A stretch of 63,890 nucleotides of DNA, counting the filler, from Hausera hauseri (Eukaryota): the NCBI GenBank assembly GCA_046269625.1. It is 11 parts of 11 records of this genome, joined end to end, with 100 filler letters (N's around TTAATTAATTAA, not from the genome) between each part and the next. Parts side by side here need not be neighbours in the genome. Positions count along the whole stretch, not along the records: positions 30,057 to 38,046 come from JBJURY010832080.1; 10 more parts are not named here. The stretch is one strand, 5' to 3'. The notes beneath the pieces are model-generated. The model saw nothing but the letters and a program-made list of their open reading frames with translations. It was not told where the DNA came from and made no database searches. Below are positions 30,057 to 38,046 of this stretch, piece after piece (position 1 is the first letter of the stretch; each line of letters opens with the position of its first letter). A program made the translations under genes and the position numbers.

Positions 30057-30746
30057 CGTTCTTTTTGTTCCGGTGTATAGTGGTACATCCACGTTTCATC
30101 AACAGTTATGAAACGATGCTTGAAATCCATTTTATTTTCCTTAAAACGATCCAAACACGCCTGAGAAATACGCATTCGAACGCATTTTTGGTCAATTGTT
30201 AGCGAATGTGGCACCCATCTTGCACAAAGATTTTTCATGTGTAAATCTTCGTGTAAAATATTTCCAATTCATTCTTTTGAGATGCCTATGGCCACAGCTA
30301 CTTCACACACTTTCATTCGTCGATCATCTAACACTGTATCATGGACTTGTTCAATGATTTGTGGTGTTGTAGCAGTTTTTGGACGACCTTCGCGTGGATC
30401 ATCTTCGAAGCTTGTACGACCAGATTTAAAAAGAGCAGCCCATCTTTTCACAGTAGCAAGTGAAGGCGAGGCATCTTTATACACTTTTAACAATTTCTGA
30501 TGAATTTCCTTTGGTGTTAAACCATCCAAAAACAAAGAATTTTATCACTGGACGATATTCAGTTTTGTACATTCTAAAAAATTACTGATACGTGAATATT
30601 AAAAAAACTAGCACCACTCAAATAAACTGAGATTGAAATAAAATTTTAAGCGTGTTTGTATAAATGTTTATATAAACAAATTACACTTATTTCACGTTAA
30701 AAATTTTTCTTTCATTGTTAGGCCCAGAACTTTTCAGACTGTCCTA
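30057..30746 (-). mobile_element. Mariner (Tc1/mariner) 5' half: TIR and frameshifted transposase
   Basis: FKSGRTSFEDDPREGRP, CARWVPHSLT, ITVDETW. TIR-like TA-GGACAGTCTGAAAAGTTCTGGGCCTAAC on the minus strand at ~30716-30746. Confidence 0.93.
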
Positions 30747-31299
30747 TAAAAAAACTATATTGTTTTTACTAAAAGACACAAAGTGAGTAAAATCAATCGT
30801 TCATTGAATGCCGTTGAATCCGTGACTTACTGGAAACAGTAAAACAAATTACAATTTAATTTTTCAATTCATTTTGACAAGACATTTTCACGAAATAAAG
30901 CACTATGACCAATTTGACTCCAAAAAGGCATGTTGCAATTTTCCAGTCCCTATTTATAACAAATACATATTAAAGTAATATGAAATGCTACATTTATTTT
31001 ACAATTTTCCATAACGAGTCTCTAAACATTTTAATACCCTGGAACTTCCCAGCAGTATGAATTCAATGATATGAAACGAGTGAATCATTTCTACGAAGAT
31101 AAACATTCTCTGAAAATATCAATGATCAAAGTTTCTAGTTATGATTAAGAAAATATTATTCAATCACTAAACTGAAATCAATAGTTTACTGTTTAATTAG
31201 TCATTTTAATGTATTCTTGGAGAATGTCTTTAATTCATGAAAGTTCCGATAATATTTTATATCCATTGTTTTTTATTCCCGTTTGTCATGACCCATTAC

Positions 31300-32188
31300 A
31301 ATCTATCAAAGTCCGATTTCACTACTGTTGATTGGAATATTAGTCTTTTTCCTGTAATCGATACGGATTGGATCGTAACATTTTTTTACCAGTTGATTTC
31401 ATTTTTGCCATTTTGAACATGAAAGGTCCTAACGACAATTATATCAATTACTGCAGACCCGATAAAGATTGTAAAAGTAACTTTAGTAATAGGAAAAATA
31501 TTACAAATAACCATACTCATTTCACCACAATTGTGTACAACATTATTGTCAATGACACAGGATTATATAATTGGACATTGACCATGTCTAGCAAATCTCT
31601 TGTTGTCAATCGTATACCTTTATGACCGTTCGTAAACCGCCTTCCCAATTCAACGCCATTGGAAGTGACTCATTTATTAAATGCCGGTGTGAAACTCAAT
31701 TTGGAGATACTGCCTACAGACGTATTTGGTTATCAGTTTCAATTAACACCAAATTTACAATGGGTTCCACTTTGCAGGTATTTTGTTTTGCAGACTCTGT
31801 TAATTCGACGGATAAAGGTTTTTATTACGTTAATCAGTCATGTTTTAAAGATTCATGTGTGTACTACACAATACAAAATGACGCAAATACACTTTTACGT
31901 TTAACATCATGCCATTTATTAGATGTCATTCATTTGCTTACAGGTTCTATACAGACTAAACCACCTGTGCATCATAACCAAAGAATTAAATTTAATTCCA
32001 CAATTGTATGTTACGGACTTAGCGGATATCCTCATCCAACATATGAATGGATTTGTTTATCACCATCTGAAATACCACTCAATGCTTTCCAAATTCCTAA
32101 TTTGACACCTATCAACGAAACACTTTACGTTGATAATTGGAATACCGTTCGTGTTCAACTGTACATTTACGAATGCATTTCCAGATAA
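31300..32188 (+). pseudogene. Ig-superfamily cell-surface protein fragment
   Basis: IIVNDTGLYN (DxGxY motif), IKCRC, IVCYGLSGYPHPTYEW and YEC; frameshifted. Confidence 0.45.
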
Positions 32189-32541
32189 ATTTCTCTTTAT
32201 CTTTCTATCAAAATACAGTTTGTTGTAAGCTTACGCAGTCATGAACCGATAATGAACCTGTGTTGTTAATACGCAAATCCACACGACGTGCGGTTTTTCA
32301 AATAAACAGGGTTCTAAATTTTTTAATGTTGCATACAAACCCTTTTTACAACGTTTCTTTTTATCCTTACCAATTACTCCCAAAAAGACACGATTGTATT
32401 TATTTCCTCTTAAATTTTGACCTCAAATACAGCGCAACGTTTGTTGAATGCTCCAACAATGTACTTTGTCCAAATATTTCCGACATTTTACAATCATACC
32501 ATAGCCAGTACAGTTCCAGTTTCATTCGGCCATGTGATGGA

Positions 32542-34010
32542 ATGGACAATTTCATGAATTCTTTGATGAATTGCATCAATCAGGATTTGATCGACAAGGC
32601 ATCACAGGACTTCTGCGAACAATACAACACTAAATTCAATCAACAGAAATTGGAAAAGGAACTGTTTTCAGTGTCCCGTAATCGATACGACCTACTGCCG
32701 TTCTACGCACGTCTCGTAGCGAATATCAGTCACATAATGAATGACGTCGGTACGGAGGTATCGTCGCTGTTGCTCGGCGAATTGAAGTGGCATATTCACA
32801 AGAAAATTCAACCAAATCTTGAGTCGAAAATCAAAAAAGTCCGATTTATCGGCAAACTCGTAAAATTCAACGTGTTGAAGAAAACTGACACCATGGGCTG
32901 CATAAAACTGCTACTCCAACAATTCAAACATCACAATATCTACATGCTCTTTACCTTGTTGGAGACATGCGGTCGTGACCTGTATCGATCACAGCCTCGT
33001 CGTTTACGGACGAGTGCCTATCTAAAAATAATGATGCGCAAAGCATCGAAAAGCGTTCTGGAAGCAAAGTATCCAACGATGATCGAGAATGCGTATTACT
33101 ACTGCAATCCACCGGATAGCACTGAAAAATTTTACGATGTCGATGAATTGACAACTGAAGAATAACTCCTAAGGAAATTATTGCACGTCGATCTGAACAA
33201 GCATAACAACGACAAAATATTCAAGATAGTTCGGAAATTCCAATGGGATAACAGACAGCTCATGAAATTCGCCATGCGTACATTCACTGAGGTGTGGCGA
33301 CTTAAATACAACAATGTACCGTATTTGGCCAGTGTCCTGGCTATATTGACACCTTACCACGAAGAATTGGTTGTATCTGTCATTGATAATGTGATTGAGG
33401 AAATACGGATAGGGATGGAGATGAATGATCCAAAATATAATCAAGACAAAATTAGTATTTTTTGTTGTCTTGGGAACTTCTATGTGTATAAATTAATCAG
33501 TGCTGCAGTAGTTTTCAATGTCCTTTATTCTCTAGTTTCTTTTGGAGTTTCTCTTGATAATTCTGTTGAATCACAACTCGATTTTCAAGATAATTATTTT
33601 CGAATTAACCTCATCCATACGTTACGTGAAAGCTGCAGTCAGTATTTTAAAACCGGTGGTATCGGAAAAAAGCTTGATATCTACCTTTTTGTATCTCCAA
33701 CAATACTATCTGTTTAAAAAACCTTTGGAGACATTTGTTGCTTCACAGCCAGAAGATGAAGTAAATGCTAAAAATCTAAAGGTCCATTTTCTGTTCTTAT
33801 CGAAGGTCGGGTTTTTGACCTGATCATAAGTCTGAGATCAAAATGCAAAATTTATAACACATTTGAAGAAGTTCAAGCAAGCATTGACAAATTCGAAAGT
33901 GAAGGCATTAAGAAATTGCAATCGAAGTCGATATATCTCGGTGATGCACCAAGTAATCAAAACCAGGGCTTACAAATTATTGAGGAGATTGCAGAGGATG
34001 AAGCTGATTA
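32542..34010 (+). pseudogene. UPF2: UPF2 (regulator of nonsense transcripts 2), MIF4G-2 and MIF4G-3 region, intronless, with a stop and a frameshift
   Basis: NCINQDLIDKA..DFC, DLLPFYARLVA, VRFIG.L.KF, LLETCGR, MIENAYYYCNPP, IEEIRIGMEMNDPKYNQ, LYSLVSFGV. In-frame TAA at 33163-33165. Confidence 0.92.
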
Positions 34011-34299
34011 TGTATTTGAAATAAGCCAAACAACCTACATTAACAAACCTCGTTTCATTCCATATCATAGCGGTGCCAATTTTGAACATCGGGACAAAAA
34101 AACCCGATACTCCGTTGCATGTCAATCCTGAACGGATATTTAAAAGATGTGAAATTCTTTTTAGTTATTTGTGCTGACTTCGAGGCTATGTTTGAACGGA
34201 AAACCAGTGCAATATTAAAAATTTTGAAGCGACAACACAGTTTCGACAAACCCAAATTGCAGAGCTATCCTAAAATATGTTTCAGTGTAAAGGAAGTTT

Positions 34300-34452
34300 A
34301 AGTTGAAGAACTCGTCCACAGGAACGTCATGATCGAACACCGCAATTTGTCCGATTACACTCCGTTAAGTTTGGCAGCATCCGGCAGTTACTTCACTGTC
34401 AATATTCTCCATGTCTGGAGTAGTGATGATCAGTCAACGGGCTCAAAATTCG
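34300..34452 (+). pseudogene. Ankyrin-repeat fragment of ANKHD1/ANKRD17/Mask
   Basis: VEELVHRNVMIEHRNLSDYTPLSLAASGSY...STGSK matches the Mask/ANKHD1 repeat EHRNVSDYTPLSLAASGGY...RTGSK. Confidence 0.75.
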
Positions 34453-34559
34453 TCACGATTCTTCACAAAATCCTCTGTAAGTCTCTCGGTAACAAACATT
34501 CGAGAGGTGCCGACGAGACTGGCGTCCATTTAATCAACAAGGATGATCCACTGAGGAAA

Positions 34560-37500
34560 ACACTACAGATGTGGCCAAATTCGACACCCAGTATTCAGGT
34601 ATTCAAACACAGGTGGGTGAGGTTCTTTTTACTGATTTATACCCATCGGTGCAGCCGCGTCCTTTGCATTTGCAAACCTTTCATATCTCCCACCCTTTTT
34701 CACTTTAAAAGTTTCTTTAGCTTATTATCTTTGTACACTCCTTTACTCCGTTTATCACTTGACCCCGCTATCCCGACTGCACGCCCATATCTTTTGTTAA
34801 CACGGAAGCAATCTACACAAGCTGCTTTTGCATTTTACCATTCTCCTGGAATTGCTTCGCTGCAACTCTCCTTCTTTATCTTCAATAACAATCAACACAT
34901 AACGGCCATTAAGGCTCCATTTAATTCCACGGCGCAGCTACTATACACCTTTCTATCCTCCTCACTCGACACTGGCAATTTCTATTTCACACATCGAGGT
35001 ATCACAGTACATCCCGTCGACTCACTCTTGTCTTTCGTATGCCACGAATGTCAAGTCATTCACCTTATGCTCCATTTTCGCCTCCGGGGTGGATCGGATC
35101 CAAATCCATCCTGCTCGGATGACAAATTCACGAATACGGGCAACATCTATCGTTTGCCACACTCCCAACAGTCATGAGGTTCATTAAACTTACCTTGTGT
35201 TAAATTCTTCCTTGACAAAAACAACTTCAGCTAGCCATGGCTCCAATTCCACCAGCAGTGACTAAAATCGAACAACATAACAGATTATTTTGTGCGAGCC
35301 AATATTCTTTTAATTCTTCTTCCTGCCAACGTCAAGCAGCAAATTAATAATATCTCCGAGCTGCTACAATCCTCGACACCATATGAGACACTCTGTGACG
35401 CTGTATTTTAATGACTATGCAATAGGGAACCAAAAGCCATCCGACTTTTTCCAAACGGCCATTCTGTAGCTCAACGCGTTAGGAGTGACCCCTACGAATA
35501 ACGCGGATTTAATTTGCCGTTATTTCTTATCGTCTTTGCCCACCTCAATCAGAGCCTTGCTGACCGTTGTTGACGAATCCACTACAATCGAAAAACTTGC
35601 AATAATGGCTGACAAATCTTTTGAGATTCTTCATACTAACAGTTCTCTCCCTGTTGCTGCTGCAACCACATGTGCTCCAACTACAGATACAACACTCTTT
35701 ACTCAACAGTTGCATATAATGCAGCAACAGTTTGACAAGCTACAACAATCGATCTTCGCCATTACTAGCCAACCAAGTAATCTTAATGGGTCTCGAAGAA
35801 GTGAAACCAGACGTTCACGGGAGCGAAGCACTTCAGTGCACTCTTCTCGGTCCATTTCACCTGGCGGACGCATGACTTGTTTCTACCACATGCGTTTTCG
35901 AAAGGAAGCAAGGAAATGTTTCTTGGGCTGTCGATTCTTTAGTGAGCGATACGCTGTAAATAACCCTATTTGTATATACCACAACAAATATTAGTCACAG
36001 GCCAGATCATGTGTGCCTGGTTGTAGATATTACAACAAAAAATCTCCTAGCTTTTTTTCCTCTACTTCCTTTCCTCCAAATCCTCCAAAAAACTCATAAT
36101 TCCTCCAGATGTTACGGCACCTTCTGGCGCAGGCAACATGGCTCAATCTTCTGGCCGTTTCAACACCGCCTATGCAGTCTTTCTGTTGAAAGCTGCACTT
36201 TTATGTAGCGATAGTTCACACATTGATTTTCTTATCGATTCAGGAGCTGCCTTTTCACTCCTTCTGTTGACCTTCGTTCCTACCTCGACCATGATTTTCT
36301 GTCCACCTCTTTTCACTGCCAGTGGACAACCGTTGAACATTGCAGGAACCACGGAATTGACTTTTATATTTGCCAACCTGCCAGATAAGTTTGCCTGGAA
36401 GTTCCACGTTACCAACATTAAATCTCCCGTAATCGGCTCAGACTTTCTTGCCGTCCATGATTTATTGGTAGATTGTAAATACAGCTGTCTTCTCAGCAGA
36501 AACTCGATTTCAACTTCAAACATTAGTCTCGCAGACGATTTAGCAAGCAATTCATTGAACTCATCTGGAAACATATTGAACGTTTCTTCATCTATTAAAA
36601 AAACTTCAGATAAAGTTGGCACACCTTCAATTATAAGCGAAAATTTTATATATATTTTGAAACAGAAATCCAAATTAGGTGTCGACAGTAACGATGCCAA
36701 TTGTTTTTCTTCAGTCACTGCAGCTGTTCTTTCTAAAGATACGCCTCAATCACTCTTATCTTTAGACGCTGATCTTAGATCATATAGTACAACATCATGC
36801 TTTTGAATAGTTAAAAGAGACATAATCGTAAAGCTCTCATCCTCAACTTATCATTACATTGTAACAGAGCATCAGAGGCCTATCAAACAGAAGGTCAGAC
36901 CTTTGTCGCCACGCAGACGTAAAGCTGTGGAGCAGGGGTTTAATGAACTGGAAAGGTCTGGCATCGTTCGGCGACCGAATTCTCCATGGGCCTCTCCTCT
37001 TCATGTATTGGGAAAAAAGGATGGAACCTATAGGCCATGTGGTAACTATCGCCAATTAAACAATCTTACTATTACAGATGCCTATTTACTACCACTCATT
37101 AAGGATATTCTTCATAGCCTCAGCAACACAAATACTTATTTTACTATTGACCTTTTAGATGTTACTGGTGCTTGTGGAGTTGTTTGAGGGAGAGATGCTG
37201 TAGATTTTGTGGTGTTTTGGGAGAGTGCTTCATGAAGAAATGAAAATGGAGAAGAAAATAAGAGTGAAGTGGATCAAGCGAAAGAGGCGAGACTGGAGGT
37301 GGAGGCAAATCGTGCGATTACGGTGAAGTGAGTGGTGGGTGTGCAGGCGATGACGGTGAAGTAAGTGGTGAATGAACAGTGAACGATGACGGAATTGAAA
37401 ACGATTGATTGTGACTCGATTGCTGCGACGGCTCAAAATTATCGAGGAAATTAGATCATGGCTCGCCTGTAGAGAAATTAGAGTTAGAATTTGAAACAAG

Positions 37501-38046
37501 GCTGTTATCCTGGTCATCATCAATGAAGAATGCTGGCTTGAGATCAGAGATATGTACATTATGAGGTTTGTTCTTGCGTAAAATAGTAGCGGTGTGAAAA
37601 CAAATATTTAGTAGTTTGTAAGGGCCAACGTATTAAGGCCGAAACCCAGACGGTGAAGGATCCTTCAGCCATACAAATATGGCTGAGTATATGTCTTCTG
37701 GAATATAAGATTTGCCTTTATTTAAAAGACGGCAAAAAGCGTTTAAGTTTACCTCTACAAAGTGGGACTGTGCTGCACGAATGGCTTCATCTGGTGGACT
37801 TTCATCCAGATTGGAAAGCTCAAATTGTGCACGAATTGGCGTCCCAAAGTAAGCTTCAGCCGGGGCACAACCTGTGGTAGTGGATGGCGTGTTGCGCCAA
37901 CCAAGTAGGACAAGAGGAAGAATCGAGGTCCAATTACGATTGTTGTTTGCCAGAATTTTTAAAGAAATCTTCATGGTGCGGTGAAATCTCTCAAGAAGGC
38001 CATTTGCTTGGGGATGATACGGCGTCGTATGGAAGTGGGCTATCCC
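34560..38046 (+). mobile_element. Mag-like Ty3/Gypsy element, copy C: UBL-Gag-PR-start of RT, then an inverted 3' end (37155-38046, minus strand)
   Basis: RLRGG|SDPNP, CFYHMRFRKEARKC, FLIDSGA, SPWASPLH, YRPCGNYRQLN. The minus-strand part matches 24430-25320. Confidence 0.93.
34860..35093 (+). other. Ubiquitin-like domain of 78 aa ending RLRGG, in frame with Gag
   Basis: LQLSFFIFNNN-QHITAIKAP-NSTAQLLYTFLSSSL-NFYFTHRG-ITVHPVDSLLSF-VIHLMLHFRLRGG. The GG codons are at 35088-35093. Confidence 0.82.

Follow-up and report, generated by a model that had tools for sequence, protein, structure and literature searches.

A ubiquitin-like domain ending in a conserved di-glycine precedes Gag in CsRn1-like Ty3/gypsy retrotransposons

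The gag region of the element copy

The stretch of DNA under study (the window; 63,890 nucleotides from Hausera hauseri, GenBank assembly GCA_046269625.1, filler included) holds a decayed long terminal repeat (LTR) retroelement, apparently of the CsRn1-like Ty3/gypsy type, in which a ubiquitin-like domain (UBL) is encoded upstream of Gag and in the same frame as its start. The analysis covered window positions 30057-38046 (record JBJURY010832080.1), where the retroelement extends along the plus strand from ~34700 onward, and six-frame translation of this part yielded 321 translated pieces. Coordinates are window positions throughout, and features lie on the plus strand unless stated otherwise.

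The UBL occupies 34860-35093. Translation of this interval gives 78 residues, the last five of which (RLRGG) are encoded at 35079-35093; the codons of the terminal di-glycine (GG), GGT and GGA, lie at 35088-35093, and the reading continues with SDPN, its serine codon at 35094-35096. The bond between GG and this serine is the presumed deubiquitinase site. A 78-residue segment ending RLRGG/S (the slash marks the junction) and in frame with Gag had been described in the first-pass annotation, and translation, a leave-one-out profile and colinearity with a database relative all bear that description out. When a UBL profile was made from 19 database relatives, with the window sequence left out, it matched a single one of the 321 pieces, 34302-35174 (E=1.3e-8, against 0.72 for the next best), in an alignment that stops exactly at 35093. 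In BLASTP comparisons with the relative P0002 the UBL is 41% identical (E=6e-12), the interval 35187-35231 matches residues 733-747 (E=2e-6) and the interval 35262-35405 matches residues 758-805 (E=1e-12). UBL, linker and Gag N-terminus are read in one frame in the window and are colinear with P0002. The same annotation had placed the segment directly before Gag; the shared frame stands, and the immediate adjacency does not, as a linker of ~31 codons (35094-35186), predicted to be disordered, lies between GG and Gag.

The UBL frame is open from 34302 to a stop at 35175-35177, which falls inside the linker, and ~186 codons are open upstream of the UBL. Within this open frame a leader can be followed at 34698-34859, the leave-one-out family profile beginning to align at 34698, and a weak BLASTP likeness to the leader of the relative P0003 reaches upstream to ~34770. 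Downstream of the linker the Gag N-terminal region, which corresponds to the part matching Pfam DUF7041 in relatives, is read in the UBL frame at 35187-35408 and corresponds to positions 1-71 of a Gag hidden Markov model (HMM). The Gag core and nucleic-acid-binding region (35395-36096; Gag HMM positions 83-294) follow in the +1 frame relative to the UBL, the piece 35470-35991 matching with E=4e-41. Besides the stop in the linker, the UBL frame holds stops at 35232-35234 and 35259-35261 and two more at 35409-35414; a frameshift lies near 35395-35410, and the frame of the Gag core is interrupted at 35467-35469 and 35992-35994. A restart of Gag at an ATG in another frame (35238) was considered and rejected, the UBL-frame reading being colinear with P0002.

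A motif search of the Gag translation located two zinc knuckles of the form CX2HX9CX3C (CHCC), the first at 35878-35931 and the second at 35971-36024, the latter broken by the stop at 35992-35994. Gag-like sequence resumes after this stop in the same frame and runs to ~36096.

Relatives and ancestry of the ubiquitin-like domain

Relatives were collected by an exhaustive protein search (phmmer) for which the Gag piece 35470-35991 served as query in place of the UBL, because Gag relatives would be retrieved even if the UBL were spurious. The search returned 715 library proteins at E<=1e-3. Among the 150 matches listed, those of the subfamily nearest the window have a domain of ~75 residues ending in GG, upstream of a conserved Gag start (FFLD..SP..W), and about 20 database relatives bear the same N-terminal domain as the window UBL. 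Their junctions include RLCGG/S, RLLGG/M, RLRGG/N, KIYGG/A and RIRGG/G. A further search of the protein collection with the family alignment A1 returned seven proteins, and an exact look-up of the window open reading frames (ORFs) in that collection found none of them.

Across the whole protein family no feature is better conserved than the di-glycine. GG accounts for two of only four invariant columns in an alignment of 13 sequences and for the only invariant columns in alignment A2 (20 sequences, the window first), where mean column identity is 16%; across the family alignments mean identity is ~16-24%. Conservation of GG across copies, which the first-pass annotation had proposed, holds in all 21 sequences and is thus absolute across a deeply diverged clade. 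Around it, leucine is kept at the position of ubiquitin L73 in 18 of the 21 and arginine or lysine at that of R72 in 15, while the glycine corresponding to ubiquitin G47 is also present in 15. The residue after GG is Ser in seven sequences, Met in four, Gly in three, Asn and Ala in two each, and Asp, Lys and Gln in one each; Pro occurs in none.

A single ORF runs through UBL and Gag in P0161, P0013, P0010, P0002 and other relatives. P0161 is the plainest case, a compact ORF of 413 residues with nothing host-like in it, in which the UBL is exactly M1-G76 and ends LHLKLRLRGG/S. In P0103 and its relatives the domain opens with QIFVK or a close variant. The linker after GG measures 15-49 residues in the relatives and is poorly conserved. 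The order of the gag product in this group is therefore a short leader, a UBL ending (R/K)-L-x-G-G, a disordered linker, and Gag with its DUF7041-type domain, core and two CHCC knuckles.

These knuckles bear on the identity of the element. CHCC motifs are conserved in the relatives as well, and the conventional CCHC motif (CX2CX4HX4C) is absent from the window Gag translation. A Gag with CHCC in the form CX2HX9CX3C characterises the CsRn1 clade among Ty3/gypsy elements, a clade known from flukes and insects (PMC2582038). On the evidence of the knuckles we assign the window element to the CsRn1-like Ty3/gypsy LTR retrotransposons. An earlier label, "Mag-like", is unsupported since the knuckles are CHCC and not CCHC. 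The element resembles members of the clade (CsRn1, PwRn1 and AgCR elements) in having CHCC in place of CCHC in Gag, and also in a -1 frame change between gag and pol, an arrangement that counts among the expression strategies reported for these elements (PMC2582038). An approximate 17-mer search (<=3 mismatches) for a tRNA-Trp primer-binding site gave no match in this truncated, decayed copy.

A tree of 115 Gag cores, obtained by a quick maximum-likelihood search, grouped 24 rows in one clade with 99% support; of the 20 rows that bear a UBL this clade contains 19, namely the window and 18 database proteins. The other five members of this clade are three N-truncated fragments (P0001, P0005, P0027) and two gene calls that begin at a methionine in the linker (P0018, P0034). 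The remaining 91 of the 115 rows have no detected UBL, P0037 excepted, and in these rows the Gag match begins within ~150 residues of the protein start. The tree unites nearly all Gags that bear a UBL, with strong support, which argues for one origin of the fusion. P0037 itself carries a UBL nine residues before the DUF7041 Gag of another, otherwise UBL-less clade, with a RING finger upstream; either a related element captured ubiquitin a second time, independently, or the gene model is a chimera. L001, a relative from the broader family and the one DUF7041 Gag that alignment A3 retrieved from metagenome contigs, has no UBL; its Gag begins with a methionine immediately ahead of the DUF7041 region. 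On viral and prokaryotic genome contigs, A3 and A4 found no loci.

Homology of the domain to ubiquitin is evident at the level of the family. The profile of alignment A1 retrieved 308 sequences from the PDB at E<=10, and the 60 matches listed are all ubiquitin, ubiquitin fusions, ISG15 or FUBI-eS30, with E-values of ~1e-3 for mono-ubiquitin, 4.6e-6 for the fusion Ub-eS31 and 1e-8 for di-ubiquitin. The match is in register with the C-terminal tail of ubiquitin: the family tail (irllGG) falls on LRLRGG (L71-G76), and the family GG on G75-G76. The Pfam ubiquitin family PF00240 is recognised in P0037 with 27.6 bits, above its cut-off of 25.4, and scores in register below that threshold (19-24 bits) in P0076, P0078, P0103 and P0010. 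On Ub-eS31 (S27a) chains the A1 match runs ~30 profile positions past GG and scores ~8 bits above ubiquitin alone; this extension could reflect low-complexity noise, or it could preserve a trace of the gene that supplied the UBL.

A model of the window interval 34860-35174 was computed with AlphaFold2 (AF2) using alignment A2 and no templates. Its mean predicted local distance difference test (pLDDT) score is 81.6, with ten-residue block means of 88-96 for residues 1-70 and 77 for residues 71-80; past residue 80 the score falls to 53-55, as for a disordered tail beyond GG. The modelled elements (strands 2-9 and 12-20, helix 26-35, strands 41-45 and 48-50, helix 56-59 and strand 66-73) follow one another as strand-strand-helix-strand-strand-short helix-strand, which is the order in ubiquitin. 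Foldseek retrieved 252 PDB matches to this model at E<=1e-3. They are headed by ISG15, SUMO and ubiquitin, which match, as does FAT10, at a probability of 1.0, a target-normalised template-modelling (TM) score of ~0.8 and a root-mean-square deviation of 2.0-2.6 Å. The best structural matches in BFVD include viral ubiquitins and the ubiquitin insertions of bovine viral diarrhoea virus (BVDV), and none of the 50 BFVD matches listed is a retroelement protein, Gag included. The model thus places the window segment confidently in the beta-grasp fold, as the first-pass annotation had expected. Its claim of likeness to ubiquitin is upheld by the family profile, by PF00240 in P0037 and by the fold, and not by the segment taken alone.

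Processing after the di-glycine

The clade encodes its Gag as a UBL-GG-linker-Gag fusion that is probably cut after GG by host deubiquitinases, which would make the UBL a removable module. Cleavage by these enzymes, which we infer by analogy with the cellular ubiquitin-fusion precursors Ub-eL40, Ub-eS31, FUBI-eS30 and SDE2, is the best-supported mechanism. The peptide bond that follows GG would be hydrolysed while translation proceeds or shortly afterwards, and the cut would free the leader with its UBL on one side and, on the other, a Gag with a defined first residue other than the initiator methionine. As a removable N-terminal module the UBL might aid expression or folding, set the N-terminus of Gag and possibly influence its stability. 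Cleavage is favoured because the tail is conserved and Pro never follows GG. A role of the kind "cut here" also fits better than one of binding ubiquitin receptors, because the tail that deubiquitinases read is kept and two surface positions are not: the residue aligned with ubiquitin I44 is Thr or Ser in most members, and K48 is not retained.

The cellular precursors resemble the present family in joining a ubiquitin-type domain that ends in GG to an unrelated protein within one ORF, as in Ub-eL40 (UBA52), Ub-eS31 (RPS27A), FUBI-eS30 (FAU) and SDE2. SDE2 offers a case in which deubiquitinases, USP5 among them, sever a diverged UBL just past its GG (PMC5131917, PMC13572447), and the cut exposes a new N-terminus that controls the stability of the protein (PMC5131917, PMC6486553, PMC13572447). 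The family differs from these fusions in its cargo, which is a retrotransposon capsid protein and not a ribosomal or host regulatory protein, and further in that most members carry a leader, that a long disordered linker follows GG, and that processing is predicted here.

Several observations weigh against the cleavage model. Several stops and a frameshift make the window copy a pseudogene. Its only ATGs in the UBL frame lie at 34329 and 34569, and no methionine stands at the start of the UBL. Most relatives likewise have a leader of 16-133 residues and no methionine at the UBL start; the domain is thus usually not at the very N-terminus. No single N-terminal rule emerges, since the residue after GG varies. 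The gene calls P0018 and P0034 begin at a methionine inside the linker, and a Gag isoform lacking the UBL is for this reason possible; on the question of a Gag start at an ATG past GG, then, intact relatives (P0161, P0013, P0002) read through, while these two calls do not. Several relatives are chimeric gene models with host domains upstream. Finally, the 78-residue segment by itself has no significant similarity to ubiquitin: Pfam reported no family for it at E<=10, phmmer against the PDB did not find ubiquitin, a scan of viral contigs with the single segment was negative, and AF2 without an alignment gave an unreliable model (pLDDT 43) for which Foldseek did not return ubiquitin. Taken by themselves, these single-sequence tests would allow a chance resemblance in a leader sequence, an option weighed below.

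The host domains of the chimeric models are histone H2A, the CNOT1 CAF1-binding domain and cohesin SA HEAT repeats, joined to UBL-Gag in P0008, P0002/P0151 and P0078. These fusions are most likely annotation artefacts, arising where elements lie in or next to host genes.

The alternative that survives best, unlikely as we judge it, is that the UBL is not removed and serves Gag as an integral ubiquitin-like signal or adaptor, which might recruit endosomal sorting (ESCRT) or trafficking factors, the proteasome or p97, in the way that a UBL accompanies the retropepsin domain of Ddi1. A folded domain on a flexible linker to Gag, as modelled, would suit such a role, many cellular proteins hold on to integral UBL domains, and a link between retroviral Gag and ubiquitin is well established. 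Retroviral particles contain free and conjugated ubiquitin, which has a role in budding, and the budding of retroviruses can be helped by artificial fusions of ubiquitin to Gag. UBL domains that remain uncleaved as integral parts of a protein, however, have generally lost their C-terminal GG, whereas here GG is the sole invariant feature of sequences with as little as ~16-24% mean identity. The Thr or Ser that most members have at the I44 position, the main receptor-binding patch of ubiquitin, and the lack of a cleavage-blocking Pro after GG in any member also speak against retention.

It is more doubtful still that cleavage occurs for the sake of the freed UBL, which would then be attached to proteins of the host or of the element, or divert ubiquitin/ISG15-type machinery of the host as a decoy. 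The R-L-x-G-G tail is like that of conjugatable modifiers, and the best Foldseek matches (ISG15, SUMO, ubiquitin) are such modifiers. Ubiquitin surface residues are, however, poorly conserved outside the tail, which makes use of the host activating enzyme (E1) doubtful, and a variable leader would usually remain attached to the freed domain. We accordingly give little credence to the idea that the clade encodes a ubiquitin-derived modifier of its own, whether conjugated to Gag and host proteins or soaking up ubiquitin/ISG15-type enzymes. Proteins left with a terminal GG by deubiquitinases are, moreover, reported as targets of C-degron pathways (PMC8013793).

That the domain is an artefact, either a chance likeness in a non-coding leader or a host UBL joined to Gag by gene prediction, would accord with the C/T-rich composition of the segment, its 9% of charged residues, the negative single-sequence tests and the chimeric relatives, but is very improbable given the leave-one-out match to the piece 34302-35174 alone, the same UBL-GG-linker-Gag order in ~20 independent proteins with different upstream sequences, the confinement of UBL-bearing Gags to one clade, and compact ORFs such as P0161 without host-like sequence.

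The fusion has parallels among viruses, mobile elements and host proteins. The ubiquitin insertions of BVDV and the ubiquitins of baculoviruses and giant viruses are likewise cases of a mobile or viral genome with a captured host ubiquitin. In BVDV, host enzymes cut after the ubiquitin insertion and free the downstream protein. The BVDV insertions are recent and nearly identical to host ubiquitin and arise in single strains, whereas the UBL of these Gags is old, highly diverged and clade-wide. Ddi1 and Ddi2 also join a ubiquitin-like domain to a protein module of retroelement type. The UBL of Ddi1 is integral, lacks a GG junction of the cleavage type and precedes a retropepsin-like protease, not Gag. 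A more distant likeness is to the 2A-like peptides of non-LTR retrotransposon ORFs, which are reported to provide a transposon-encoded separation of an N-terminal leader from the main protein (PMC3708506); these peptides act by ribosome skipping in a different class of element, whereas the present proteins have a folded UBL and a putative cut by a host protease.

A full-text literature search across 8.4 million texts found no description of the UBL-Gag architecture, in agreement with the first-pass annotation, with the limit that most subscription journals lay outside its coverage and an earlier mention is possible. The description of the CsRn1 clade (PMC2582038) differs in that the word ubiquitin does not occur in it. 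We found no report of a natural retroelement whose Gag is encoded as a ubiquitin-type fusion. The clade therefore offers a natural experiment on what a genetically fixed UBL does for the production of a capsid protein, the definition of its N-terminus or its stability. If cleavage is true, the elements would have acquired a new host dependence, relying on host deubiquitinases for maturation besides their own protease. The signature UBL-GG-DUF7041-CHCC also provides a simple annotation marker, and flags gene models that wrongly join elements to host genes. Taken as a whole, the first-pass interpretation is partly supported.

Surroundings of the element copy

Beyond Gag the element continues with an aspartic protease region at 36138-36803, read from the sequence, in which DSGA is encoded at 36237-36248 and the frame lies one base back from that of the Gag core; Pfam found no significant family in the piece 36138-36803. 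The N-terminal part of a reverse transcriptase follows at 36807-37184, likewise read from the sequence and too short for Pfam RVT_1, and the element ends at ~37184. No LTR pair was found within 30057-38046.

Upstream, on the minus strand, a fragment of a Mos1/mariner-type transposase N-terminus lies at 30269-30535 and reaches the edge of the piece (Pfam HTH_48, E=2.3e-6). By-eye likeness of 34329-34500 to a mariner transposase C-terminus was dropped, Pfam giving it no support. Apparent exons of a UPF2-like gene (nonsense-mediated decay) occupy 32260-33717 on the plus strand as two long open stretches, with Pfam MIF4G matches of E=1.4e-25 and 3.2e-19. The retroelement lies just 3' of these exons, and a location in an intron or in the 3' flank is possible.

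The sequence beyond the end of the element (37185-38046) is G/T-rich with a GC skew of up to +0.5, and contains a degenerate 33-nt direct repeat at 37314-37379. A minus-strand ORF at 37633-37974 resembles an integrase C-terminus by eye, a likeness for which Pfam found nothing. The features of 37185-38046 suggest a rearrangement or a nested, inverted element.

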